Assembly: GCF_006345805.1 (NCBI RefSeq)
Contig: NC_043001.1
Span: 103,354,001-103,418,000, forward strand
From: Octopus sinensis
Taxonomy: Eukaryota
Length of the DNA: 64,000 nt
Reading direction: 5' to 3'
The notes below the pieces were generated by a model. It had not been told where the DNA came from and searched no databases. It saw only the letters and a list, made by a program, of their open reading frames with translations. Below, in pieces: positions 625-60,959 of the stretch (positions within the stretch are counted from its first letter, which is position 1; each line of letters begins with the position of its first letter). Position numbers and translations under genes: made by a program.

Positions 625-1136
625 GTTAGTGCTCCATTCTAGTTTTCTATTCAGGCTAGGTTATTTTCTTTATGTGTGTAGCTTCTGTAATTGTCTATTG
701 TTGCATCTGTTCTATTGTGGACAATATTTTAATTTCTATGTTATTGATTGATCCCCCGTGTTCCTGTTCGGCGTGTTGGTACAGAATCGATGAGCTTTTA
801 CCTTCCTTAAGTTGTCTCCAATGTCCGTTTACCCGCTCTCCTATGCTTCTTGCCGTTTCCCCTACGTATGTCGTTGTCTTGTTACTGCATCCTCCCTCTA
901 TACATCTTATACTATAGACTACATTTCTGGCTTTACAGTTTGTTTTATGGGCTAAATCTACATACTGTACAGTACTTATCCGTACAGGGGGTTCTACTAA
1001 AAGGATAGGTTCTACAAATTATAGATTTGATAGAGTTGCCTGGCTTTTCAACAACCTTAATTCTTAGCTTAAGTTTGTCTAGGGTCCTTCTAAAGCGGTA
1101 CGCCAGTTCACCTCCAGGGGTGGTGTCAACGAACAT
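625..1136 (-). pseudogene. PLE GIY-YIG endonuclease and Cys/His linker, frameshifted
   Basis: After a frameshift at about 945 the frame reads HKTNCKARNVVYSIRCIEGGCSNKTTTYVGETARSIGERVNGHWRQLKEGKSSSILYQHAEQEHGG (VVY..YVGET..R motif with CCHH residues), then hits stops. Confidence 0.88.
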
Positions 1137-1200
1137 GACACTCTGGTATTTATGGCTATCATATCAAGAGTTGGCCTTCCTATTTTCTTTTTTGTCCTTT

Positions 1201-3417
1201 CTATAGTGTTCCATGACTGTTTCCTATAGAGTGGACAAATCCTATTCCTATCATTACATATATATTATCAAATTTCTTCATGGCTCCTTTGTATACTCTG
1301 ATCCTTTCTTTATAGCTGTAACCTGAGAACTGCATGCGGTGAATGAAATATTGTATGTGTCTCTTTAACTCTGTGGGCTCGCACATGCGTGACACATTTC
1401 TCATTATTCTGACGAGGTCTGCCATCAAAATATTGAATTTGGCATTGTCCGCAATGGCTGAGTTCCGGTGGATCAAGTATTTTGAGGCCATAGGTTTGGC
1501 ATAGTATGAATGAAGGATTTGGGTTTTATTATTCACAATTTCTAGCCAGAGTTCAGTGTTTAGTACTGGTAGTCTATGGTTGGGGTGTTTAGTGGGGTAG
1601 TCTATTGTGACCTTAATACTCTGGTGGATGGAGTTAGCTATTTGCTGGATGCTCTCCATAGTATTAGTTTCTATTACTATATCAACATTACTCTCTTGTG
1701 GGAGTGCCTTTACCACTATGTTGATATCATCAACATAGCGAGAGTACATGTTTACTAGTATGGAGTTCTGTGTTAGGCGTTCTTTAAGCCTTCTGTCCCA
1801 CCATACCATGAAACGGTTGGCCACATCACTAGCGATACTAACGCCGATGGCTGCCCCCTCGCCCTGGGCATATATTTTATTATTAAACTTAAACGTGTGG
1901 CCTTTTAGGGTAACTCTTATACTAGCTCCTAGTGCATGTGCGATCATTTTCTTTATCTGATGGACATTTGCGGGGCTCCGTATGGCTCTGGTCCATCCGC
2001 GCCATCTTTCTACATGTGTTTTCCTAGCCATAGAAGTAATTGTGGGCGGTCTACCTCTTAAACATCTGCTGGGGCAGAAACTACTAAGATTATGTTTATC
2101 TAAGTATTGATTATTACATGTCAGTCTAACTAGGAGGTCCAGTTCTTCTGTGTTGACATTACGGAACTCCACCTGGCTCTCATTGATCATCTCCACGCAC
2201 TTCTCCACCGCAAAATCTACGTCGATCGATGGGTATAGGGATACCACATCCATGCTACCCACCATACATCCTGTCAGGTCACAAGTGTTGTTACAGTCAT
2301 CGATCCTGCTGAGGAGATCTTCTGTGCTGTCACAAACATCGGGTGACATCCGGATTATAGGGCGTATGATCATTGAGAGGAAGTAGGAGATTCTGTAATT
2401 GCTAGCGATATTCGCTCCACAGACTGGTCTTGTTGGTGGTCCTGCTATAGGGTCAGTAATTACTTTATGGTCCTTGCGAAGTCCATACAGTGCCGGGATA
2501 TCATTGTTCCAGGCTTGGAAATTATTTGCTGTACGTTTCTGGGGTCCCAGAACAATTGTCCACATCATCATGTGGGCGTTGAGGACCTTTTCTCCCTCCT
2601 CATGTGCCTGTACAGTTGTTATTTTTGTATTGACGATATGAGGTTGCATTGCCTGGGTGTAGTTCGGTAAGCTGTCTATTGACATCCTGCCGGACTTATC
2701 TGTGGGAAGGCATACCGCCTCCCCGTTCCTCGTGCGCTGAATAAGCTTATGTAGGCCACTTGCAGGTTTAATCCCGAGGTGTTGGGCCTCTGTCCTATTC
2801 TGTCTCTGTCTCTTAGTGTATAATCCTAAAATCTGTCTAAGTTTGGTCCTAGCTATAGTGAACTGTGCTTCCATATAGTCATTAGTATGTCTTGGGATGT
2901 AGACTCTTTTGTTGAAGGGTAATGTTGTTGGATAAATCCGGCTCATGCAGTAAGTTTTGTCACATACGTTGAAGAATTGAGTGTCAAAGGGGTGGGTATA
3001 CATGTCAATGGTCATTCTAGGGTTATCTTCATTATCGTTACTGTTTCCATCATCAGCCTCCCTATTATTATTACTACCCTTACCACTACTACTATTATTA
3101 CTATTACCACCACAATTACCATCATTACTACTTCTACTGTTACCACTACCACTATTATTGTTATTACCATTATTCCTACCATTGCCATTATTACTATCAT
3201 TCTGATTATCGCTAGTGATATTTTCATTGTTCTTGTTTCTGGTGTATGTGTTGTTCATATTAGTGTTGGGTTTTATGTCTGTCTGTTGGTCCCTGTCATT
3301 CCCTCTGTTGTGGTTGTTATTTTTGTTCCTACGAGTATTGTTATCTGTTTCAAGTCTACTGACTCCCTGTCCAAGGATTCTGTTGCATTCAACTTTATTT
3401 TCCATCGTGACCCCCAC
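1201..3417 (-). pseudogene. PLE reverse transcriptase ORF (RT core open, ends frameshifted)
   Basis: Motifs PTDKSGR, PPTRPVCG, SMDVVSLYPSID (A), EGAAIGVSIASDVANRFM (B'), YSRYVDD (C), LPVLNTELW (E) and YYAKPMAS (thumb). The RGRPPTIT insertion between A and B' is as I recall for Neptune-type PLEs. Confidence 0.9.
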
Positions 3418-4150
3418 GACACAACTTTTATTCGTGTTTTTGTGACTGTGGTTATCTGTGTGTATGTTTGTGTGTCGGTTCTCCCTATAATTGTTGTTGT
3501 TGTTGTATACGATTTTTTCTCTCTGTTTATGTTTTTGTTTTTGTAACTATTGTTTGTGTCTATGCATTCATTTTTTCTATTGTTGTTGTTGTTACGGTTC
3601 GTGTTGCTTTTGTTGCTACGGTTGTTATTGCTGCGCTCATTATTGTTTGTGTTGTTGTTGCTGCGGTTAGTGTTTTTCACGTTGTTGTTGTTGTCGCAAG
3701 TGTTGTTGTTATTGTATCTATTTAAATTCCAACGTATTTTTGTGAACGACTTTTCAATCTCGGACAGGCATTTGATGGTATTCACCTTACTATACACTGC
3801 ATACTTTGGTGGTAGCTGAAGTATCGATATTTCGTCTGGGTCCGTTGTTACTCCCCCATAGATGTTCGTTTCATTGTCTTTATTGAACTCTTCTGGTAGT
3901 AGCACATCTTCCATAATAATTCCATTTATTGTATCTGGATACTTCTGCTTTTCTTCCTTTGCGAGCTCATATTGATGTTTTTGTTTCAATCACGATAACT
4001 TCCTCTTAAAATGGATATTGCATTGGTGTATTACGTGTCTGTTTTCTTCATATATTAAATCCATTAGTGTGGTTTTCTCCTTTCGTGTGGTGATGTTTTT
4101 AATTTCTTTTAAAAATATACGTATGTAATTATACACATCACTCCATATAC

Positions 4151-8009: not shown

Positions 8010-8395
8010 CTAACTTTACGTTCTGAGTTCAAATTCCACCGAGGTTGACTTTGCCCTTCATCCTTTCGGGGGTGATAAAATAAGTACCAGTTGAATACTG
8101 AGCCATTACCTCGGAATTGCTGCCCCTGTGTCGCAATTTTAAACCAATATTAATATTATTATAGGCGGCGAGGTGGCAGAATCGTTAGCACACCGGGCGA
8201 AATGCGTAGCATTATTTCGTCTGCCGCTACGTTCTGAGTTCAAATTCCGCCGAAGTCGACTTTGCCTTTCATACTTTCGGGTCGATTAAATAAGTACCAG
8301 TTACGCACTGGGTCGATATAACCGACTTAATCCCTTTGTCTATCCTTGTTTGTCCCCTCTATGTTTAACTCCATGTGGGCAATAAAGAAATATAT
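8010..8395 (+). mobile_element. tRNA-derived SINE family B (partial copy + full copy)
   Basis: aggcggcgag.tggcagaa..gttagca...gttctgagttcaaattccgccga.gtcgactttgcctttcat; many other copies in the window. Confidence 0.85.
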
Positions 8396-19704: not shown

Positions 19705-20126
19705 GAGAATACCTATTTCTTTATTACCCACAAGGGGCTAAACATAGAGGGGACAAACAAGGTCAGACATAGGTATTAAGTCGATTACATCGACCCCAGT
19801 GCGTAACTGGTACTTAATTTATCGACCCCGAAAGGATGAAAGGCAAAGTCGACCTCAGCGGAATTTGAACTCACAACGCTGCGCCTGACGAAATACCTAT
19901 TTCTTTATTACCCACAAGGGGCTAAACACAGAGGGGACAAACAAGGACAGACATAGGTATTAAGTCGATTACATCGACCCCAGTGCGTAACTGGTACTTA
20001 ATTTATCGACTCCGAAAGGATGAAAGGCAAAGTCGACCTCGGCGGAACTTGAACTCACAACGTAACGCAGACGAAATACCGCTAAGCATTTCACCCGGCA
20101 CGCTAACGTTTCTGCCAGCTCGCCGC
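19705..20126 (-). mobile_element. SINE family B partial tandem (about 183-bp period)
   Basis: tacctatttctttattacccacaaggggctaaaca is repeated at about 19710 and 19893. Confidence 0.88.
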
Positions 20127-20593
20127 CCAAAGAGGGGTGACCCTCAGCTGATTAGTAAACCGCCGTAGCTTTATAATAAATTAGTCAATACTAGTGACTC
20201 ACTGGCATTCGTTGACCGCCCAGTCTGAACAAATACTTAAGTTGAAGCGTGAAGCAATGATGGGAAATAAATTTTAGGTGAGTTCAGATATGTTTGTAAC
20301 TTTTAAAAGCAATTTCCCTGGAGTTTACCGTGCTAGAAATTTATAACGAGCCAGAATTCCATTTTGGGGTCCAACAGAAGGCGCCACTGAAGTCACGATG
20401 ATGTATTTATATATAAGAGAGAAATTTTTCATGGTAAACCGCAGTGAAATTGCTTTTAGATGCATAAGTATGTCAGAAACATATTTGAAATAACATGAAG
20501 CTTCTTCCTTTCTTTATGTAAATAAAACAAAAAAAAACACACTTCGCTCAGATTCTTGATAAATATATTGTTTTCATTTCCTTTCTGTTATAG

Positions 20594-25080: not shown

Positions 25081-25082
25081 GA

Positions 25083-25456
25083 GGCACTCCGTCGGTTACG
25101 ACGACGAGGGTTCCGGTTGATCCGAATCAACGGAACAGCCTGCTCGTGAAATTAACGTGTAAGTGGCTGAGCACTCCACAGGCACGTGTACCCTTAACAT
25201 AGCTCTCGGGGATATTCAGCGTGACACAGAGTGTGACAAGGCCGGCCCTTTGAAATACAGGTACAACAGAAACAGGAAGTAAGAGTGAGTGAAAGTTGTG
25301 GTGAAAGAGTACAGCAGGGATCACCACCACCCCCTGCAGGAGCCTCGTGGAGCTTTAGGTGTTTTCGCTCAATAAACACTCACAACGCCCGGTCTGGGAA
25401 TCAAAACCGCGATCCTACGACTGCGAGTCCGCTGCCCTAACCACTGGGCCATTACA
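25083..25456 (-). mobile_element. tRNA-headed SINE family D
   Basis: Reverse complement of 25626-26007; A box tggcccagtggtt and a B-box-like gtttgattccc. Confidence 0.9.
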
Positions 25457-25625
25457 CATACAGACATCCAGGACCGCATTCGGAGAAGGGTCACTCGACA
25501 TATACACATTAAATGATTCACAGACACATATCAGCTTCTAACCCACAGGTTAGCTCTCTCTGCTTTCTGTATGGCAATTATAACACGTCTCTTCAATCCA
25601 TGCCCCTCACCACCTTCTATTGTGT

Positions 25626-26007
25626 GGAGGCGCAATGGCCCAGTGGTTAGGGCAGCGGACTCCCGGTCATAGGATCGCGGTTTCGATTCCCAGACTGGGC
25701 GCTGTGAGTGTTTATTGAGCGAAAACACCTAAAAAAAAGCTCCACGAGGCTCCGGCAGGGGATGGTGGTGATCCCTGCTGTACTCTTTCACCACAATTTT
25801 CTCTCACTCTTACTTCCTGTTTCTGTTGTACCTGTATTTCAAGGGGCCGGCCTTGTCACTCTCTGTGTCATGCTGAATATCCCCGAGAACTACGTTAAGG
25901 GTGCACGTGTCTGTGGAGTGCTAAGCCACTTAACGTTAATTTCACGAGCAGGCTGTTCCGTTGATTCGGATCAACCGGAACCCTCGTCGTCGTAACCGAC
26001 GGAGTGC
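25626..26007 (+). mobile_element. tRNA-headed SINE family D
   Basis: ggcgcaatggcccagtggttagggcagcggactc...gtttcgattcccagac head; tail ...cgtcgtcgtaaccgacggagtgc. Confidence 0.9.
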
Positions 26008-26215
26008 TTCTTCTTCTATTGTGTCCAACCCTGCACATTGTGGAAACTTGAGGGAGAAAGGGCTGCGGCAGAACCCTGTTTGGCATTCCTTACAGCTGCT
26101 TGTACTGGAGCAATAAGAAATGAATGAAATGAGTGAAATGAAATGTCTTACAGTTCTATATTTAGGAGATGAGGAATTATGCCCACGGGCATAATAATAA
26201 TAATAATAATAATAA

Positions 26216-27060
26216 AAGCAGAGAGCGAAGGTTTCATCCTGGCTGCTCAAGACCAAAGCCTATTAACCCGGAACTACCAGGCCAATATGATGAAAAATGG
26301 AGCAAACCCAAAATGCCGATTCTGCAACGACATGATTGAAACAGTGGACCACCTAATCTCTGGATGTAAAGTCTTAGCACCAGTGGAGTATAAATTAAGA
26401 CATGACAGAGTTGGCCAATATCTCCACTGGCTAATAAGTCGGCATTACAATATCAAAACTGCCGACAAGTGGTATAATCACCACCCTGAGGCTGTAACTG
26501 AAGGAGAAAATGTAACCATTCTGTGGGACTTTCCAGTACATACAGACCGAACCATCAAGGCCAATAAACCAGATATTGTTGTGAAAGACCAAAACAATAA
26601 AGTTTGCTTATTGATCGACATGAGCATCCCCTGTGATCATAATATCTCAGCGAAAGAGTTTGACAAGCTCAGAAAATATAAAGACCTACTCATTGAAATT
26701 GAGAAAATGTGGCATCTCAAGGCGGTTACAATACCAGTGATCGTAGGAGCACTAGGAATGATCAAGAAGGGAACCGAAAATTATATGAGAATGATCCCTG
26801 GCTTACCATCCCTGCAAGAAGTGCAAAAGATTGTCTTAACTGGTACATCACACGTATTGAGAAGAGCATTGTCGATGTGAGAACTGTTGCTGCTCATGTA
26901 TTTTAATTTAACTTTAAAAAAAAAAAAAAAAAAAAAAAAGAACGAACTACTGAGTTTAGTTTAATGGCCTACCAATATACACTATGAGTTTCTTTGCCCT
27001 AGGAGTCGGGAAGACACTCGGCAAGAAATGGAAGAAAATTTGAAAGAAGAAAAAAAAAAA
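26216..27060 (+). mobile_element. 5'-truncated R4/Dong-like non-LTR retrotransposon (CCHC finger + restriction-like endonuclease)
   Basis: CRFC..MIETVDHLISGC zinc finger, RHDRV, WDFPVHTDRTIKANKPDIVV, LIDMSIP, K..KY.DL and VIVGALG motifs; stop at 26880. The 3' UTR ends in an A-run, and (TAA)n lies on both sides. Confidence 0.9.
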
Positions 27061-28444: not shown

Positions 28445-28526
28445 AAAAAAGCTGAAGAACGCCCGAGGGTCTCGAACCCACAGACACGATAGGCATTCGA
28501 CCATTGGACCAATGCAATCCTTCAAA
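28445..28526 (-). ncRNA. Candidate vault RNA (Pol III small RNA)
   Basis: TTTGAAGGATTGCATTGGTCCAATGGTCGAATGCCTATCGTGTCTGTGGGTTCGAGACCCTCGGGCGTTCTTCAGCTTTTTT. A box TGGTCCAATGG (28511-28501), B box GGTTCGAGACC (28478-28468), TGAAGGA/TTCTTCA terminal stem, T6 terminator. The 3' part matches the human vtRNA 3' segment as I recall it (GTTCGAGACCCGCGGGCGCTCTCCAG) at 23/26. Confidence 0.65.
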
Positions 28527-28558
28527 TTTCTCGAACCATTTTAGAAACTTTATTCTTA

Positions 28559-28793
28559 CCTATTTCTTTACCACCCACAAGGGGCTAAACACAGAGGGGA
28601 CAAACAAGGACAGACAGACGGATTAAGTCGATTACATCGACCCCAGTGCGTAACTGGTACTTAATTTATCGACCCCGAAAGGAAGAAAGGCAAAGTCGAC
28701 CTCGGCGGAATTTGAACTCAGAACGTAACGGCAGACGAAATACTGCTACGCATGTCGCCCGGCGTGCTAGCGTTTCTGCCAGCTCGCCGCCTT
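28559..28793 (-). mobile_element. SINE family B insertion with 13-bp TSD
   Basis: aactttattctta (28546-58) and aactttattatta (28794-806) flank a full copy. Confidence 0.9.
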
Positions 28794-29609
28794 AACTTTA
28801 TTATTACCAGCGAGAATTGTACGCTGTCAGTTTTTTCTAGAAGGTACCGTGTTGGTACAGAGGGTAGAGGTAGGGAGGCTCAGGAATGTAGTTTCCAGTA
28901 AAATAACACAAATGATACATAAATTCATAACTTATTGAAGTTTGTTAATACATCAAATACAAAATATACGCACCATCCAAACATCCATACGGAAGATGAC
29001 AAGTCTTTCAGCAGTTTCACCGATATTGTCTGTCCAATTTTTCCGAAAAAACAAAAAAACAAAACAGAGGACGTTGAAGACTTCACAATATAATAAGATT
29101 CCATAAATGCAATTAGAAATAATATTCAGCCATATTGATAGATCATCCATTAATGGTGACTATATCGATATTATGAAATTGGTTGTTGATCAAACGTGAT
29201 TTGGAAGTATTGGTCATTGTAATAACGATTTCTTACAAAAATGGTCGACATTTAAAACGTCTACGTCAGTATATTACAATATCGTTTTTGTTCTTTCTCA
29301 GCTCTCTAATCGAATCTCACTGGAATCAATAAAACATGAGTTCTATAGAACCAAGCCATATTGTAGGAGGGGCGGCATATTTGATTAACTTTGTTTTGCC
29401 ACCCATTTCTCGATATGTTCCCTTGTTTTTATGCGACGGTTTACGTACCCCTCTAATTTATGCGCCGGTTGATGATTAATTCTGAATACACCCCACCTCC
29501 ACCCCAACAGGTTTATACAAACTAATTGCAGAGCATGTGCGGTTCTATACACAACTCAGTAACGCATTCAACTGTGTCTCGCACCAAAACTTCTGTTTTT
29601 CATCTAGAC

Positions 29610-33977: not shown

Positions 33978-34162
33978 ACAATTTAGGAGTGACCTTAACA
34001 GGCCATTCGTCCACCAGAAAGAGCAGCCATAACTCACACCGCCAAGTAGTAGTAATTCAGAAATTAATTAATTTCTGAATTACTACTACTTGGCGGTGTG
34101 AGTTATGGCTGCTCTTTCTGGTGGACGAATGGCCTGTTAAGGTCACTCCTAAATTGTTATAT
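33973..34162. repeat. Perfect 190-bp palindrome with no spacer
   Basis: Centre agaaattaattaatttct (34067/34068); complementarity checked out to 33973/34162. Confidence 0.97.
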
Positions 34163-39179: not shown

Positions 39180-40150
39180 GACACCTTTTCTTTTATCTTT
39201 TACTTGTATCAGTCACCAAATTGTGGCCATACTTGGGCACCACCTCGAAGAATTTTTATTCAAATGAATCGATCCCAGTACTTACCGTTTCCTTTTTTTA
39301 AAACCCAGTACTTATTCTATCGTTCTCTTTTGCCAATCCGCTAAGTCATGGAGACGTAAACACATCAACACTAGTTGGCAAGCAGTGGGGCAGGGCAAAT
39401 ACGGACACACACACACACCACACACACACACAAATATACACTCATATTCTCATAAGGCCTTGGTCGGTTCGAAACTACTGTAGGGGACACTTGCCCAAGG
39501 TTCCACGCAGTAGGATTGAACCTGAAACCATGCTATTGGGAAGCAAACTTCTTACCACATAGCCACACCTGTGTCTAAGTGTACCTTTGGGAGCAGAAAA
39601 GAATGTACATCTCGTGGAAAGCGGCGAGCTGGCAGAAACGTTAGCACGCCGGGCGAAATGCTTTGAGATATTTCGTCTGCCGTTACGTTCTGAGTTCAAA
39701 TTCCGCCGAGGTCGACTTTGCCTTTCATCCTTTCGGGGTCGATAAATTAAGTACCAGTTGCGCACTGATGTCAATATAATCGACTTAATACCTATGTCTG
39801 TCCTTTTTTTCTCCTTTTTGTGTTTAGCCCCTTGTGGGTAATAAAGAAATAGGTATTTCGTCTGCCGTAACGTTGTGAGTTCAAATTCCGCCGAGGTTGA
39901 CTTTGCCTTTCATCCTCTCGGGGTTGATTAAATAAGTACCAGTTACGCACTGAGGTCGATATAATCGACTTAACCTCTTTGTCTGTCCTTGTTTGTCCCC
40001 TCTATGTTTAGCCCTTTGTGGGCAATAAAGATATAAGAATCGTAAGCAAGCCGTGCGAAATGCCTCGCGGTATTTCGTCCGTCTTTACGTGCTGGGGTCG
40101 ATCTAATCGACTGGCTCCCTCCCCAAAAATTTTCTGGCCTTGGACCTAGA
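39180..40150. mobile_element. Cluster of SINE A (-) and tandem SINE B (+) copies
   Basis: Family motifs as above. Confidence 0.82.
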
Positions 40151-41039: not shown

Positions 41040-42279
41040 ATCCGATTTTATGTCCGAATATGTCCGATTTTACCTTTTTTAAAATTGAATCAAATTTAAA
41101 AGTATTTAAGAATGTTTAATGGAATTAAAAATCATTTTTATGCTTTGGTATACATTTAAACTAATTAAATATTATTTTACAGAATAGGATTAAAATTTCT
41201 TTGATTAAAACCCTTTCTAACATGGAAGTATCCAAAGAGCATTTGAGGCGCATAATGCTTTATGAGTACAAAAATGGAAACTCTGCAGCCAAAGCACTCG
41301 AAACATAACACTCTGTTAATGGGAAAGAATGCTTGAATCAAAGAACTTGCAGAAGATAGTTTGCAAAATTCAGAAGTGGAGATTTCAACCTTGAAGATGA
41401 AGACCGAACAGGACGTCCAGTTGAGTTTGATGATAAGCTCCTTGGGGCATTACTTGAAGAATTGGCAATAAAGCTTAGTTTAAACCATACAACTATTCAT
41501 CGTTATCTTCAACAACTTGGAAAGATTCCTAAACTTGGAAAATGGGTGCCTCATGAATTGTCCGAAAGCAACTGCAAATCCCGAGTTGACATCTGCTCTT
41601 CTCTCCATTCTCGCGAACTCCTTTTTGGATAGACTTGTGACTGATGACGAAAAATGGATCTTCTATCGAAATGTTAAACATCGTAAACAGTGGCTTGGTA
41701 AAAGAGAAAAAGCTCAACCACAACCGAGAAGGGAACTTCATGGAAAAAAGGTTCTTCTCTCTATCTGGTAGGATTGCAAAGTAATTGACTTTGAATTGTT
41801 ACCACCTAATGCAACAATCAATGCTCAAGTCTACTGTCAGCAATTAGAGCGTTTAAACCAAGCTTTGAAGAAAAAAAGACCCGCTTTAGTGAATCGAAAA
41901 GGAGTGATGTTTCATCAGGACAATGCGCGACCCCACACTGCAAAGATCACATCACAGAAGATCGAAGAGCTTGGTTGGGAAAAAATTCCTCATCCACCTT
42001 ATTCTCCCGACCTTGCTCCTTCAGACTACCATTTGTTTCGTAGTTTACTGAATCATTTGGGAGAAGCCAGGAGGAGGTCGAAATTGACATTTCAGAGTTC
42101 TTCATTTTGAAACCAAAAGAGTTTTACATTGATGGGATTAAAAAGCTTGTAAATAGATGGAAGGAAGTCATAGATAATCAGGGAAAGTACACTGATGGTT
42201 AAGTTTCAATTAAATATAACATTTGATCACTTGTTTTCTTTATTCAAAATTCGAACAGAACTTATGGGATGACCTGATA
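41040..42279 (+). mobile_element. Near-complete mariner (DD34D) element, disabled
   Basis: ATG at 41222; WVPHEL, VTDDEKW, HQDNARPH and HPPYSPDLAPSDYHLF motifs; stop 42202; 3' TIR cttatgggatgacctgaTA. Several stops and frameshifts. Confidence 0.93.
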
Positions 42280-44157: not shown

Positions 44158-44825
44158 CAGGCAGCGAACTGACGGAATCCTTAGCACGCCGGACAAAATG
44201 GTCAGCTGCATTTCGTCCGTCTTTACCTTCTGAGTTCAAACTCCACCGAGGTCGACTTTGTTTTCTCATCGTTTTGAGGTCGATAAATTAAACACTAACT
44301 GAGCACTGGGGTCGATGTAATCGGCTTAGCTTCCATTCCCACCCGAAACTGCAGGCCTTGTGCCAAAATTTGAGGCCAACAATTTTTTTTTCTTTTACAA
44401 TCTTATTTTCTTTTAGTAATATTCTTTTCTACTCTAGGCACAAGGCTCAAAAATTTAGGGGAGGGGGCCAGTCGATTACATCGACCCCCGTACACAGCTG
44501 ATACTTAATTTATCGACCCTGAAAGATGAAATGCAAAGTCGACTTCGGCGAAATTTGAACTCAGAACGTAAAGACAGACGAAGTACCTATTCCTATTTCT
44601 TTACTACCCACAAGGGGCTAAACACAGAGGGGACAAACAAGGACAGACAAACGGATTAAGTCGATTACATCGACCCCAGTGCGTAACTGGTACTTATTTA
44701 ATTGATCCCGAAAGGATGAAAGGCAAAGTTGACCTCGGCGGAATTTGAACTCAGACCATAACGGCAGATGAAATACAGCTACGCATTTCGCCTGGCGTGC
44801 TAACGTTTCTGCCAGCTCGCCGCCT
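44158..44825. mobile_element. SINE B cluster
   Basis: One + copy followed by tandem - copies. Confidence 0.82.
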
Positions 44826-45754
44826 TTATTCTAATGAAATATTAAAACCCACAAATTAAACATGATATCCTGAAACTCATTACTATCAATGAACCAAACG
44901 AACCCGGTTTGAGATCTTTACAATTCTAGGAAATACCAACTTTACAAGATCTACTTTGGTTAAGAAGTCTTTTCCGTTGATATCACTATTGTATTAGTAC
45001 ATTTAACTTATCATCAAAATTTTGACCTATTAATCGCAGCTTACTTTTTATCTGGCAAAATTATCTGTTCTTTACAAACACACGTATATTATTGAAACTT
45101 TGTAATTGTTCAGATCTGTCTGATAAAGAAATGATAGATATGTATTGAGTAAAAACACTAAACACGATTTGGTTTTCTGTCCGAGTTACCGGTTTTCGGG
45201 ACTCGTCGATGCATTTATATTCAAATTAAAAATTTTTTGGCATGTTCTCTTAGTTTTAAAAAAGGTCTTTACTAAGATTCTGGCCTATTTTTGTCTGTAC
45301 ACACACACACACACACACATGTGCACGGTGGCTTATTTTTCTGTTGTCAATCTTGAATTTCCATTTACAACAGTTTTATTGAGGAATGTTAACATTTAAA
45401 CTTGTTCAATGTCAAGAGTTGTTTCAGTTCAAACCTGAAATAAAGCAGCGAATTAGATTAATTATTAGATGCTTAATTAGATGTCTCATTATGGCCTACA
45501 ACTTAAGAAACCCAGTTTCTAACCACAATATTACAGCTGTTTATTTTCATGACTCCAACGGAACCAAACTCCAGTGTAGCAGAATTAGAACCCTATAGCA
45601 CCGTATTCCTGGTAGAGTGGGAATAGCCTAAATCTGATCTCCACCGGATATTCCCATTAAAGCAGCAATGATACAGGAAAAGAAGATGAAATATTAGAGA
45701 CAGGAAACTGATCCACATTGCATCTTTGTAGTCTGTGTCCTCCACACTTGTTCT

Positions 45755-46150: not shown

Positions 46151-46754
46151 CCTATTGTTTACTTGAGTTTAATTTTTTTTTAAATGTTTTAATTGGAATC
46201 TTTTGGCAATGAAATAAACATGTAACAAACCCAGCACTTAGTCTGGTAAAAAAAAAAGGGCCAGGCCTGGCCTTTTTACATTTGAGGACATTTATGATGA
46301 TATGAAGTGTTTACTCTTATGCAGACAATGAGAGCAAATCTGTTCGTTAATGTGCCTGCAGTCGTTATTCTTGAGCAGGATATGTGACTCTATATTTTTG
46401 TGTTCAGGAGCCTAGGTGGAAGGTGGAGTTAGACACAGAGGGCCCAAGTCTGAAGGGGGTTAATAACAACAAAAATGGATATTATTCATCTGGTATTCTA
46501 ATCCAGAGTCACAGGAATGGTAACTGGTTTGGTGGGGAAAATATGAAACCCAAGTTCTATAGAGAATTGTAAGTAATGAGGTGCACGCATTTCTCAAAGG
46601 AATGAACTAATTAAGGGAATAAATCTAACTGAAATTGGAATCAATTAAGGGTGCAGCAAGACTTGAAACTTAGCCATCAGACATAGCACAACCTTGTTCA
46701 TGTGAAGGATCAAGTTATTGACCAATTAGTAACCAGACTTCATCTGATAAAAGG

Positions 46755-46985
46755 CGGTGAGCTGGCAGAAATGTTAGCATGCTGGGCGAAATGCTTAGCA
46801 GTATTTCGTCTGCCGCTACGTTCTGAGTTCAAATTCCGCTGAGGTCGACTTTGCCTTTCATCCTTTCGGGGTCGATAAATTAAGTACTAGTTACGCACTG
46901 GGGTCGATGTAATCGACTTAATACCTTTGTCTGTGCTTGTTTGTTCCCTCTATGTTTAGTCCCTTGTGGGCAATAAAGAAATAAG
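46755..46985 (+). mobile_element. SINE B
   Basis: Family motifs. Confidence 0.88.
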
Positions 46986-51620: not shown

Positions 51621-52240
51621 TTGTTTTTTTTTTTTTACGTTCGATTCTACTTAAGTTGATGTAGACACGTCTCTGTGTGTTCACTAATATCTCAGCTTAT
51701 CTTTATCACTATATTCGTATCTTTTTTTTTTTTTCTCTTCCTCATTTGATGACTTGTCTGAAAATATCTCGAGTTTGGATTTCTTTCCTCTCGTCTCAAA
51801 AAGAAAGTCATTCAAAAATATGAGGTTTAGAAAGAAAACGTAATTATGGCTTAAAGGAAAAGAAATAGCAAGTTATTTTCATAAAAAGAACCCGTACAAA
51901 GACACAGTCATTCAGATAAATGTATGAAGTGGGAAAAGCAACACAATTCGAAGTGAAAGGAACAGAGTTACTTTGACCGAGGACTTAATTTTCCGATCAA
52001 CCGATGACTTGGTAACAAATTTGTTATTCTATTCGTACAGATAGATATATGTAAGGATATATATTTATACATTATAAATATTTATATATGTATATCAACA
52101 CATTGGACGCTGCTCCCTAACAATTTGTTGTCGAAAGATCCAAGATAAAAGAAAAACTTCTACCACCAGTGATAAGTTAAAGCGATACATATATATATAT
52201 ATATATATTCTTTTACTGTTCCTTAAAATAAATTGCAACC

Positions 52241-52477
52241 ATGGTGACCAAGGGCAAAGAGGTTCTAACAAATATTCAACTTCGACGGTTATTGGAACAT
52301 CAGTACAAAGCGGAAGGTTCGTCCCTTCTTGAACCGGTCATGCAGAAATTTTGGCGATGGTTAGTTGAGCAAGTGCCCCGTTGGTGGGCTCCTAATGCTA
52401 TTACGGCCACCGGTCTTGTTTTGAACATTATGACCACTCTGGTGATGGTTTACTACAGTCCTGATGCTAAACATAAG
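52241..52477 (+). CDS. CEPT1: Choline/ethanolamine phosphotransferase (CEPT1/CHPT1 family), first coding exon
   Basis: [79 protein letters not shown] matches the family N-terminus (QL.RL.EH.Y...G.SLLEP...W.WL...P.W.APN.IT..GL). Phase-0 donor AAG|GTAAGT at 52478. Later exons were not found in the window. Confidence 0.93.
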
Positions 52478-53261
52478 GTAAGTTTGATAACCAAGCACCT
52501 TAAAAATAACATGATGGTCAAAACTATGTCCATTAAATATCTCGTTTCTTTTCTTCCTCTCCCGTTTACGAGTGACTTACCGACTCCGTTCAGGACATTG
52601 GGTTCACCCTTACCTTGACTACCATTATTAATACTAACACCACAAGAACAAATATATCAATTACCCGTCTAATTAATAAACGAATTAACTAAAGAATCAA
52701 GTCACTCCCCCTTCTAGTCATTTCCCCTTTCTTCAACTGTCAAGCCGCCTTCACTTACGAACGATCCCCTTCTTTTCATTAAATTAGCAACTAATTATAT
52801 GTAATTAATATTTCGCTTCATATAAAACAATATTTAATACAACACACACACTCATATATATATTCTTTCTGTTTACGACGTGTTTGGAATATAAGACCAA
52901 GCCAGTCTTTATCAATATCATCCCGTCTAGTATAGCTAAATAAACTATTTTTTGGTTAATGTTTACTCTATTTAATTGTAACCGTTTTATTTTTGTAAGT
53001 TCGTATTATACTGAGGTCATCTTTGCATTTTGTCCTTCTGTGAACAGAAATAGCAGTCAGATTGGGACTGGCCAATTTGTGACCCTGTGCCAGTGTTTAG
53101 TAATCGATATTACTTAACTCGAATTCAATAAAAGTCACATATATTGAACAGATGGAGTTATCAACATTAACAGCAAGCTGGTTCAATACTAAATTGTTCG
53201 TTATATAGTTTTATCGATATTCGAATGACTAGCGATTACCTTTTAAAAGTTTGTTTTTTGT

Positions 53262-57177: not shown

Positions 57178-58310
57178 TATTGGGACATGCCATAAATAAT
57201 GTGCTTTTTTTATACTTTCATTTTTCAAAATTAAGTAAGATAAACAAAGTTCTTTTTTAATCTAAAATATACTTTATTTTATTTTCTACAATGCTCGTCC
57301 ATTTCTCTGCTAGACTTGCAAGGTCCCTCTTCCAAAATTCATTTGTCCCTGATGAAAAATACTCCCCCAATATTGTTCTGACCTTATCTACTGTATTTAT
57401 ACTTTTTCTGTCCAAATGATTTTGAAGACTGCGGATGGAGGCAATGTTCGGCGAATATGGTGGTTGGGGCATTGTTTCCCATTCAAACTGCTTCAGTTTT
57501 TGGAATGTCATCCTTGCTATATGTGGGGAAGCATAATCTTGATGGAAGAGCACTTTTCGTTTTGAAACCAAAGCTGGTAATTTTTCTTCTAGCGCTGACT
57601 TAAGCCACTCAAGCTGGTCACAGTAGATCTCCTTTATTATCGTTTGGTTTGGGCTTAAAAGTTCAAAGTGGACTAAACCTTTTTTATCCATCCAAACAGA
57701 TAACAACACCTCACATGGGTGAAGACCTTTAGCCCAGGGTCGCTTGACATTTTCATAGAGAACCCATTTCTTGTCACCAGTTACTGTTCAGTGCAAAAAA
57801 AGTTCATTCGTGAGATGTGACAGTAAAGAAGAGCACGCATTCATTCTCTGCACGTGATTAGACTCGGGAAGTTTGTGAGGAATCCATTGACCCAATTTGC
57901 TGACTTGTCCAATGGCACGCAGGTATCGATGAATGGTTGAATGACCAAATCCAAGCTTCTCTGCTAGTTCCTCAACAGTTATGATGGGATTTTGTTCCAC
58001 CAGGGTTTGCTGGATGTCCTTGTTGAGCTCTACAGATCTTCCAGGATGAGTCCCTTCTTCTAGTCTGTAGTTTCTGGCTCGGAATTTCTGGAACCACCAT
58101 TAACACTAGCTTACCCTTATTGTCCAATCTCCATATACTGCATCAGTATTCTTTGCACTTTCCATTGCATTGTTGCCTTTATTGAACTCATGAAGCAAAA
58201 TATGCTGAATATGCTCCTTTGTTGCTTCTGTTATAGCTTTGAAATATAAAATAACTGTTAAAATCAAACTGCACTCTTCAAAACTTGCACTAAGAATAAG
58301 TAACACAATA
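57178..58310 (-). mobile_element. Near-complete mariner element, disabled (intronic)
   Basis: EATKEHIQHILLHEFNKG, WIPHKL, LLSVWMDKKG, FHQDYASPH and PPYSPNIAS; TIR TAttgggacatgccataaataat. Confidence 0.92.
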
Positions 58311-60959
58311 TGCTGTCCAGTCTGGGAATCGAACCCATGAGTGAGTGCAACATCTTAACCACTCGACCACATGCATTTATACTTCTTCAGGTAATCATCA
58401 TCGTTTAACGTCTGTTCTCCATGCTAGCATGGGTTGGATGGTTCGACCGGGGATCTGAGAAGCCAGGAGGCTGCACCAGGCTCCAGTTTGATCTGGCAGG
58501 GTTTCTACAGTTGGATGCCCTTCCTAACACCAACCACTCAGTGAGTGTAGTGGGTGCTTTTTATGTGCCACCTGCACAGGTGCCAAGCGAGGCTGGCATC
58601 GGCCACAATTTGGATGGTGCTTTTTACATGCCACCGGCACGGAAGCCAGTCTAGGTGGCGCTGGCATCGGTCACGTTCAGATGGTGCTTTTTACGTGCCA
58701 CCGGCACAGGGATCACAACTGCAGTTTCCATTGATTTTGATGTTGGTGTACTTGACTCAATGGATCTCCTCAAGCACAGGGTCGAAATAGTGTTTCTTCA
58801 CTTGCCACCTGCACAGGAGTCAGTCCAGTGGTCCTGGCAACTGCCGGGTGCCAGTCATAGGATTGGTTCAATTTCGATTCCGATTTCACTTGCCCCAACA
58901 GGTCTTCGCAAGCAGCGTTTAGTGTCCAATGAAGGGAGTTTGGCATGGGTGCCTGTCGTCGGATGAGGTTCGATTTCGACTTCGCTTGCCTCAACAGGTC
59001 TTTGTGTGTCCGAGGGAGGAAAGTCCTCTCCTAAAACTGCACCTTCAGTATAACCTATGTGAACCTTTACACCATCTCAAGAATCATTCATTTCAGAAAA
59101 AAATACAATTTCAAAGAAAATTATGTATTTCATGGTTCTCTATAAACTTCTGTTTGTCTTGCAGTTTTTTAAAATAACCATGGAATTTCCACGGACCCTG
59201 CTGGCAATAGGAATCAAAGACTATCAATACAGATAGTCTGTAATGTTGTATTTGTTCTATAATTTCGTATTTAAACAACATTTTTGGTCTCTCCTTGTTG
59301 CTTAGTAGTGTTGATTGTCTGCTTGTTTCAATTGAGGACTGACAGATCTTTTCTCTTGTTTTCAATTTTTTCTGGATATTATTTACCCACAGGGTTCCTT
59401 TGGTTGGTGGTACTCCTGTTTGGATGGGTTTAACAGAGGTATCCAGCTTCTTTTGTGGCCACAGAGGCTGCTGCAGATATCATCATTTAGCCTGGTCATA
59501 TTGACATTTGTTTCTGTGGCTATTTGTTCTGTGATGTCCACGTTCATGCTATTTATGATTGATGTTGTTTTAGTATCAATTTATTATTGTTGTTGTTGTT
59601 GTTAACTTTAAATGACATGCAATCAGTAGTCCTTAAAGAGTGGTAGCAGCCAATAAATAGGCCAGTTATCAATGGTTTAAGAATCAGGCCTGTTTCTGTC
59701 CAATCATTGATCCTGTCACCTTGCTACAACTTTCTGACATTCATTGCAGTTATGCTTTTCTTGATATCAGCAACCTTTTTAGTTTCCTCATCTAATCGTA
59801 CCTTCACTCCTATGTAGATAACAACCACTCCGTACCTCTCTTAACACATTTTGCATTTAGATTAGACTTAATCTGCAAGTGACTATAGTGGCTGACTTAG
59901 GCCCAGTGGAGGTTTCATATGAGCCAATGAAAAAGCTCTGTGTAGCTACCCAGTCTGCTAGAAATAGGAATCAAATTTCTCTCAAATCACAGCCAACCAG
60001 CTTTAAAATGGAATTTTACATTGACTAATATAGACCTAGGTATATCGTCTTCATCATCCGTTTTCCATGCTGGCATGGGTCGAATGGAATTGGCAAGACC
60101 AGGAGCCCCACCAGGTTCCATTGTCTGTTTTGGCAAGGTTTCTGTGGCTGTCTCCAGAAAACTGGAAAATCCTGAAATCTGGGCCACTTCCAGTCCTAAG
60201 CTGGCAGATATTTGGTCCGGCGCTGTACCTAACACCTTTGGTTTAACTAACAAAGTAGATACTTTCTGAAATTTAATCTGTACTGTTTGCAGTGAATGCA
60301 TCCTAAGACAGCTACACTCTTATTGTTCCCCTGGATTAAGGTGGCAGACATCTTTATAACTCACAATAATTGACAATATTTCAGTGTTATCAATGATATG
60401 TTGTTTTGAAATACAAAGTTTATTGTATCAAATTCTGTTCTGTCACTTTCAAATATACAGATCTTTTGCAACTCATACATTGATTTGTGTGTTGCTTTCT
60501 ATTTTTTTGTGTGAAAACTAGTTTTTTCAAAAGCTATAACCTTACAGTCCCCATATATAGGTACAAGTTCAGAAATGGTGATGCCATTTCACCAAAATGA
60601 CTTACTGTTGTTTGTAGTGAACATGTTGAGCTTGTTGCTCAACACTTTTCCCCCTAGTATTGTAGTCTCCAAATGAGAGAGTCAGCATTTCGCTTCCACC
60701 CTCAGCCTTCTGTAATTAATTAATGGTTCCAAGAAGAAAGGAGGTGACTTTCAGGGGCAAAGAATGGGTTGGAAGTAATATGTGCTGATCCTGCTCTCAA
60801 TAGGTTACGGCTTCCAAGTAGCACCATAGACAGAGGTGTAATGAAGGGTTGTGTTTTCGGAAAATGGAATGAGGATGTGGTGGATGCTTGACAGAGCAGA
60901 ATGGGGGTAAAAGCTGATGCATAATGCTAAATAAGGCATCATTTTTAGTATGGAGGCAG

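Follow-up and report, generated by a model that had tools for sequence, protein, structure and literature searches.

The question raised by this locus is whether an 82-nt unit on the minus strand of an Octopus intergenic region, put forward in the preliminary description as a vault RNA gene, is indeed one. Vault RNAs (vtRNAs) show little conservation, and work on them outside deuterostomes has been scant. No description of a cephalopod vtRNA was found in the literature searched. As the best explanation of the sequence, we suggest that the unit is a Pol III type-2 transcription unit complete in itself, or a copy of such a unit that has recently lost its activity. Judged from the sequence, its 3′ ~40 nt, comprising the B-box hairpin, the 3′ strand of the stem and the U-tail, are related to the vault RNA 3′ module, and its 5′ ~35 nt resemble a tRNA and do not contain the vault 5′ hallmark. 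Since the 3′ half is vault-related and the 5′ half tRNA-like, we tentatively regard the unit as a vault-RNA-related Pol III copy, possibly a divergent paralogue or a pseudogene, and not as a demonstrated octopus vault RNA. The earlier caution that it may be a real gene or a pseudogene still applies.

The unit reads UUUGAAGGAUUGCAUUGGUCCAAUGGUCGAAUGCCUAUCGUGUCUGUGGGUUCGAGACCCUCGGGCGUUCUUCAGCUUUUUU on the minus strand of the window, by which we mean the whole 64-kb stretch of DNA that was analysed (Table 1). Its A box was recovered with the tRNA-type pattern T-R-G-Y-N-N-A-N(2-3)-G-G and is followed, after a gap of 22 nt, by the B box, exactly as the preliminary description had it. The T6 tract is the sole run of four or more T on the minus strand within 28801-28400. 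A strict scan for the combination of A box, B box and T4 returned two instances in the window, namely the unit and a SINE-type head at 58.3 kb, and the combination was found in none of 200 first-order Markov simulations of the window. The boxes of type-2 promoters are typically 30-40 bp apart according to PMC7279448, and the 22 nt of the unit are thus shorter; this short spacing could weaken the promoter. The AT-rich stretch upstream of the unit may, from its sequence and position, act as a TFIIIB site.

Table 1. Positions in the window of the unit, its parts and the adjoining SINE family.
Feature	Position	Strand	Basis
Whole unit, candidate Pol III type-2 transcription unit	28445..28526	-	Sequence read, fold, single copy in window
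A box TGGTCCAATGG, tRNA-type	28501..28511	-	Pattern scan
B box GGTTCGAGACC, a perfect match to GGTTCGANNCC	28468..28478	-	Pattern scan
T6 Pol III terminator	28445..28450	-	Sequence
9-bp terminal stem, 5′ strand UUGAAGGAU	28517..28525	-	RNAfold MFE and centroid
9-bp terminal stem, 3′ strand GUUCUUCAG	28452..28460	-	RNAfold
5′ hairpin GCAUU...AAUGC around the A box	28493..28515	-	RNAfold
3′ hairpin GUCUG-U-GGGUU-CGA-GACCC-U-CGGGC around the B box	28461..28485	-	RNAfold
Vault-RNA-like 3′ module UGUCUGUGGGUUCGAGACCCUCGGGCGUUCUUCAGCUUUUUU	28445..28487	-	Rfam Vault alignment (model ~62-99); pairwise alignment with human vtRNA
TATA-like, AT-rich stretch TCTAAAAT, 12-19 nt before the first base of the unit	28538..28545	-	Sequence
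tRNA-derived SINE, 240 bp, same orientation as the unit, just upstream and not part of it	28554..28793	-	Window copies and target-site duplication
Further copies of the SINE family	44592-44826, 19894-20127, 46751-46983, 39618-39855, 8148-8392		Examples among at least 11

RNAfold arranged the unit as a three-way junction of a terminal stem and two hairpins, at -27.5 kcal/mol. The fold has a z-score of -2.33, and 2 of 200 shuffled sequences folded equally well. The paired ends and the terminator noticed from the sequence were recovered here as a 9-bp stem next to the T6 tract. The 5′ hairpin is like a tRNA D arm and not vault-like, with no match to positions 1-32 of the Vault model. Depending on the start and on the length of the U-tail, the predicted RNA would measure ~73-80 nt, which is at or below the lower bound of the ~80-150 nt quoted for vtRNAs.

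The human vtRNA1-1, 1-2 and 1-3 sequences were used as printed in PMC10087102, and they agree with the vtRNA1-1 3′ end that the preliminary description had given. Its figure of 23/26 identical positions in the core was also correct. The similarity to vtRNA1-1 in fact covers ~41 nt: it begins at UGUCUG, takes in the B box, CGGGCG and UCU.CAG, and reaches the U-tail. Smith-Waterman scores of the unit against vtRNA1-1, 1-2 and 1-3 were 51, 48 and 45, compared with 23.7±3.3, 27.5±4.1 and 23.2±3.0 when everything but the A and B boxes was shuffled, and the observed scores were reached by 0 of 2000 such shuffles. The human vault RNAs (RF00006; VTRNA1-1, 1-2, 1-3) and the unit have in common the Pol III type-2 layout, box A, box B, the paired ends and the U-tail, and they are nearly identical in the 3′ ~40 nt (UGUCUG..GGGUU..CGAGACCC.CGGGCG.UCU.CAG..UUUU). 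The elements by which a vault 3′ module can be recognised, that is the B box, CCCGCGGGCGCU, the 3′ stem strand and UUUU, were all present. So were box A, box B and an oligo-T terminator, at an atypically short spacing: the gap between the boxes is 34-44 nt in the human vault RNA genes (counted from the PMC10087102 sequences) as against 22 nt in the unit.

The Rfam Vault model gave a less favourable picture. On the tightly cut stretch, Vault was the top family of 4227 (23.3 and 22.0 bits, E = 0.002-0.004), but it was matched in 5′-truncated mode only, over model positions 25/33-99. The score came wholly from the 3′ 38 nt, aligned to model positions ~62-99 and including highly conserved consensus positions, and it was 11.2 bits when 30-50 nt more context was included. 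The gathering score of RF00006 is 34 bits, so that the scores on the tightly cut stretch are 11-12 bits too low for membership. No RF00006 match was obtained at the gathering threshold or in a 301-nt scan at E<=10, and in a whole-window scan at E<=10 none appeared among the 150 matches listed, all of which scored at least 23.8 bits. By extrapolation from the E-value, chance alone would produce some tens of 22-bit partial matches in a genome several Gb in size. The RF00006 search that the preliminary description had named as a check therefore did not bear out the assignment, with scores below the gathering score and no match in ordinary scans; tRNA models failed too.

Canonical vtRNA carries GGUUACUUCGA. 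The 5′ hallmark, box A plus UUACUUCGA, does not occur in the unit. No sequence within the unit or further upstream matched Vault model positions 1-32, which hold the 5′ stem strand and the hallmark, and neither TAGCTCAGCGGTTACTTCGA (with up to 4 mismatches) nor GGTTACTTCGA (with up to 1 mismatch) was found anywhere in the window. Vertebrate vault RNAs possess a GGCUGGCUUUAGCUCAGCGGUUACUUCGA 5′ module that the unit does not have. The box-A region of the unit folds on itself, whereas in vault RNAs it pairs with the strand that follows the B box, and the terminal stem lies ~4 nt further inward than in vertebrate vault RNAs. When the unit was folded as a vault-type panhandle, with inner UCGAA/UUCGA and GGUC/GACC helices, it reached -12.4 kcal/mol, 15 worse than the -27.5 kcal/mol of the minimum free energy fold, a comparison made on a single sequence. 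A longer vault gene starting at an upstream GCUGG and split by the SINE was considered and rejected, as there is no box A there and the 5-bp complement is at chance level. Of the vault RNA assignment, then, the layout and the 3′ similarity (0/2000 shuffles) stood. The model score of 22-23 bits against 34 and the missing 5′ hallmark spoke against it, as did, less decisively, the disfavoured panhandle. As two of the defining features tested were lacking, the unit should not be filed under RF00006.

Homologues of vtRNAs have already been reported from Lophotrochozoa, as Rfam matches in Lottia gigantea and Helobdella robusta and as five expressed vtRNAs in Fasciola hepatica. These reports have to be added to the earlier remark that deuterostomes and trypanosomes are the main groups in which vtRNAs have been characterised. 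Box A with UUACUUCGA is the most conserved part of vtRNAs across animals, including Lottia, Helobdella and Fasciola, and the 5′ hallmark of the first two served as the probe that found the Fasciola vtRNAs. All five expressed Fasciola vtRNAs keep GGGUUACU(U/C)CG, and their B box is weak. These lophotrochozoan candidates, which belong to the same superphylum as the octopus, resemble the unit in their comparable size, paired ends and T-run terminator. In these candidates, however, GGGUUACUUCG is retained and the B box is weak or lost, whereas the unit shows the opposite, a perfect B-box module without the hallmark. We consider it distinctly unlikely that the unit is the working vault RNA of the octopus, remodelled and reduced to a minimum, in which a tRNA-like 5′ domain would replace the otherwise animal-wide box A-UUACUUCGA module and the 3′ module would have stayed near the vertebrate one.

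No tRNA was detected in the window by ARAGORN with default settings, and at the 80% threshold the program returned only a forced and implausible 95-nt “tRNA-Met” fit, in keeping with the earlier remark that a cloverleaf cannot be formed. The Rfam tRNA model (RF00005) had no match at the unit at E<=10 with lax filters, on stretches of 85-156 nt. The unit thus has no cloverleaf with an anticodon arm and is detected neither by the model nor by default ARAGORN, and its identification as a tRNA gene was rejected. It does share with tRNA genes and SINE heads an A box in tRNA register, a D-arm-like hairpin, the T-loop UUCGAGA and a GGGCG acceptor-like strand, but unlike tRNA genes it has an extra outer stem and lacks an anticodon arm, a cloverleaf and a match to the tRNA model. 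For control, a eukaryote-type tRNA-Lys-like gene from a metagenome (L006) was compared. It contains an identical 19-mer, GGTTCGAGACCCNCGGGCG, followed by a T-run, and it was matched by the tRNA model at 17.4 bits and not by Vault. The similarity score of the unit was 39 against this gene and 31.5 against tRNA-Lys-CTT, in what we take to be its sequence. It follows from this comparison that part of the common motif is a tRNA-Lys-type T arm and acceptor. At the sequence level, the unit is clearly closer to vtRNA (45-51) than to the tRNA-Lys-type sequences compared (31-39). ARAGORN found no real tRNAs in the 450 kb of fetched loci for a yardstick panel.

A tRNA-like minihelix (AAUGCCU/GGGCGUU plus T arm), reminiscent of mascRNA/menRNA (RF01684), can also be drawn in the unit. 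The RF01684 model scored 14.1 bits there (E ~1-3.5), compared with a gathering score of 42.5. mascRNA is excised by RNase P from a long Pol II transcript, unlike the unit, which has its own A and B boxes and T6 terminator. Scores for mascRNA-like RNAs, YrlA and other Rfam families were at noise level, and these candidates were discarded.

The adjoining SINE, which lies upstream, ends 27 nt short of the unit. It is bounded by an 8-bp target-site duplication, ATAAAGTT, at 28546-28553 and 28794-28801, which shows the SINE to be the later arrival, inserted into a site that already existed. Its family, with copies of ~235-240 bp, has a head with the B box GAGTTCAAATTCC and a body containing GGGGTCGATAAATTAAGTACCAG. 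At least 12 copies were found in the window and none of them extends into the unit. Given this and the boundary set by the duplication, the possibility that the unit is part of the adjoining SINE was ruled out. Because the SINE has no internal T4, a Pol III transcript initiated in it would stop at the T6 of the unit. The SINE landed in an AT-rich stretch 19-27 nt upstream of the unit, approximately where TFIIIB would sit; this may be a coincidence, or it may hint at targeting to a Pol III gene.

A second A/B-box pair with a short gap (23 nt) was observed at 58325-58369 (minus strand), reading TGGTCGAGTGG...GGTTCGATTCC and then CCAGACTGG. It is located directly downstream of the (GAT)n tail of another repeat, and its CCAGACTGG is common to the SINE at 25.6 kb. 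Homology of the unit to this element or to the 25.6-kb SINE was rejected, as the similarity was not significant with the boxes held fixed (p = 0.13-0.41).

The unit appears to stand alone in its surroundings. In agreement with the preliminary description, blastn found no second copy in the 64-kb window, and no overlap with any repeat of the window was found. It was also absent from 24 kb of O. vulgaris sequence. As had been noted, no SINE body is attached, the T6 directly following the head; dispersed copies composed of head, body and tail and flanked by target-site duplications, as expected of a tRNA-derived SINE, were found neither in the 64-kb window nor in the 24 kb of O. vulgaris, and the unit differs from tRNA-derived SINEs in both respects. 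A pseudo-protein assembled from six-frame ORFs of the flanks had no match among 5.8 billion proteins, so no coding remnant was found there. A 9-mer, GGTTCGAGA, situated 3-11 nt upstream of the unit (28529-28537, minus strand), equals the core of the B box of the unit, and the 5′-truncated Rfam alignment took it as the vault “UUCGA” element. A decayed tandem second copy in the flanks, including this 9-mer, was rejected as not significant (405/1000 and 132/1000 shuffles), and the flank around the 9-mer has no significant overall similarity to the unit.

Only one clear cellular gene was found in the window, a choline/ethanolamine phosphotransferase gene (CEPT1/CHPT1-like) on the plus strand, with its first coding exon at ~52241-52482 (ORF 52232-52615). 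The position of this exon places the unit ~24 kb upstream of the CEPT1-like gene, in unique non-coding DNA. The exon was 85% identical to Logan ORFs and 61% identical to its nearest named relative, CEPT1 of Elysia marginata, and it had no 100% match in the protein collection, in which the species of the window thus seems not to be represented for this exon. Apart from the exon itself (78% DNA identity), nothing aligned with the DNA of the nearest relative, and exact look-ups of the ORFs of the window led to no orthologue of the unit. A pattern scan of JGI metagenomes returned 67 loci, nearly all of them GC-rich prokaryotic coding sequence, together with three tRNA-Lys-like genes. Pattern scans of GTDB and of viral sequences returned nothing except one chance 20-mer in a bacterium.

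Several readings compete with that of a vault-RNA-related copy. The unit may be a relic derived from a tRNA, either a decayed or internally deleted tRNA gene or the solo head of a low-copy SINE, with no function of its own. Its T arm and acceptor would then resemble a vault RNA because the boxes of vault RNAs are themselves tRNA-like. The abundance of tRNA-derived SINE heads is consistent with such an origin, one family being present in the window in at least 12 copies and a further one at 25.1-26.0 kb, in addition to the 58.3-kb head, as are the tRNA register of the A box, the D-arm-like 5′ hairpin and a total length close to that of a tRNA. The tRNA-Lys-like control, with its identical 19-mer and T-run, and the scores of 39 and 31.5 point the same way. 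However, the tRNA model had no match even with lax filters and ARAGORN found nothing by default; the similarity to vtRNA exceeds that to the tRNA-Lys-type sequences, and the control itself is not matched by Vault. Two perfect boxes with an intact stem and terminator are unusual for an old relic, and neither a SINE body nor homology to the SINE heads of the window beyond the boxes was found. We consider a tRNA-derived relic possible but somewhat unlikely. The unit could instead be a small Pol III RNA gene that is tRNA-like and specific to its lineage, comparable to other tRNA-like regulatory RNAs, with a function that has nothing to do with vaults and a 3′ half shaped by shared Pol III, La or structural constraints. 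This would agree with features resembling those of an intact gene, with a favoured three-way junction that differs from the vault panhandle, and with the failure of both the tRNA and the Vault membership tests. Yet the resemblance of the 3′ half to vtRNA extends far outside the B box and the U-tail, which shared machinery alone does not explain, and this reading seems quite unlikely to us.

It would also be very unlikely, in our estimation, for the unit to consist of Pol III-like motifs brought together by chance in non-coding DNA and noticed because many windows were read. Such an assembly would fit a sub-threshold Vault match whose E-value is not significant genome-wide, and the terminal stem alone is modest (z = -2.33). 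The absence of the A box, B box and T4 combination from all 200 Markov simulations argues against it, as does a similarity to vtRNA that none of the 2000 conditional shuffles reached; boxes, stem, terminator and similarity moreover coincide within 82 nt. Finally, the unit could serve mainly as a termination or 3′-end cassette of the upstream SINE, giving a chimeric read-through RNA of ~345 nt. The common orientation, the 27-nt distance, the lack of a run of four or more T in the SINE and the position of T6 as the first terminator downstream would all suit this role. But the target-site duplication indicates that the SINE came later to a pre-existing site, the other SINE copies do without the unit, and any downstream T-run would terminate transcription. 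We regard a cassette as extremely improbable.

If the preferred reading of a vault-RNA-related Pol III unit is followed, its anatomy suggests how it would be transcribed. TFIIIC would recognise the two internal boxes, and TFIIIB would be placed on the AT-rich TCTAAAAT upstream, which was preserved when the SINE inserted. Initiation by Pol III would be close to the first G/A of the unit, and termination would occur within the T6. The product would be a U-tailed RNA of ~75 nt, probably folded as a three-way junction of the 9-bp terminal stem, the D-arm-like box-A hairpin and the extended box-B hairpin.

An expressed and conserved unit would provide a handle on cephalopod vault biology and would represent an unusual case of an RNA whose two halves differ in conservation. 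If a remodelled vault RNA were the true explanation, it would be the 3′ module, and not the 5′ hallmark, that is under deep constraint in cephalopods. If the unit is a relic, it is a warning that, in genomes rich in tRNA-derived SINEs, perfect A and B boxes can be present together with a vault-like 3′ module even though the defining 5′ module is absent. It would also warn that Rfam scores vary strongly with how a stretch is cut.

The other elements of the window were mostly mobile. A Penelope-like retroelement at 698-3546 (minus strand) consists of a reverse transcriptase ORF of 781 codons (1204-3546) followed by a GIY-YIG-type ORF. Its reverse transcriptase was 93% identical to “Hypothetical predicted protein [Octopus vulgaris]” (OX597831.1), with the next-best match at 50% or less. 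One O. vulgaris locus (L071) held several Penelope-like copies with 88-91% DNA identity, and repeat families common to the window. The genome had been taken for that of a cephalopod from the sequence alone, and the 93% match and the common repeat families support this and point to an Octopus. Frameshifted remnants of mariner/Tc1-type transposases were observed at 41360-42107 (plus strand) and 57260-58099 (minus strand), the latter with a match to Pfam Transposase_1 (E = 5e-11). An ORF of 235 codons at 26173-26877 (plus strand), with a weak zf-RVT match, is probably the C-terminal part of a LINE ORF2. A “Sprouty” ORF at 62.4 kb was dismissed as a low-complexity artefact and not a gene. Simple-sequence and palindromic tracts were present at 34008-34127 and around 32.7-33.0, 34.9-35.9, 50.3-50.6 and 8.8 kb, and they attracted many sub-threshold Rfam “microRNA” matches on both strands, such as mir-2513 (83.3 bits, compared with a gathering score of 89) and mir-297/mir-466. 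These matches are almost certainly low-complexity artefacts. Two copies of the other tRNA-derived SINE family, at 25081-25466 and 25621-26010, are 92% identical, inverted relative to each other and 154 bp apart, and as RNA or DNA this pair could form a hairpin of ~390 bp.
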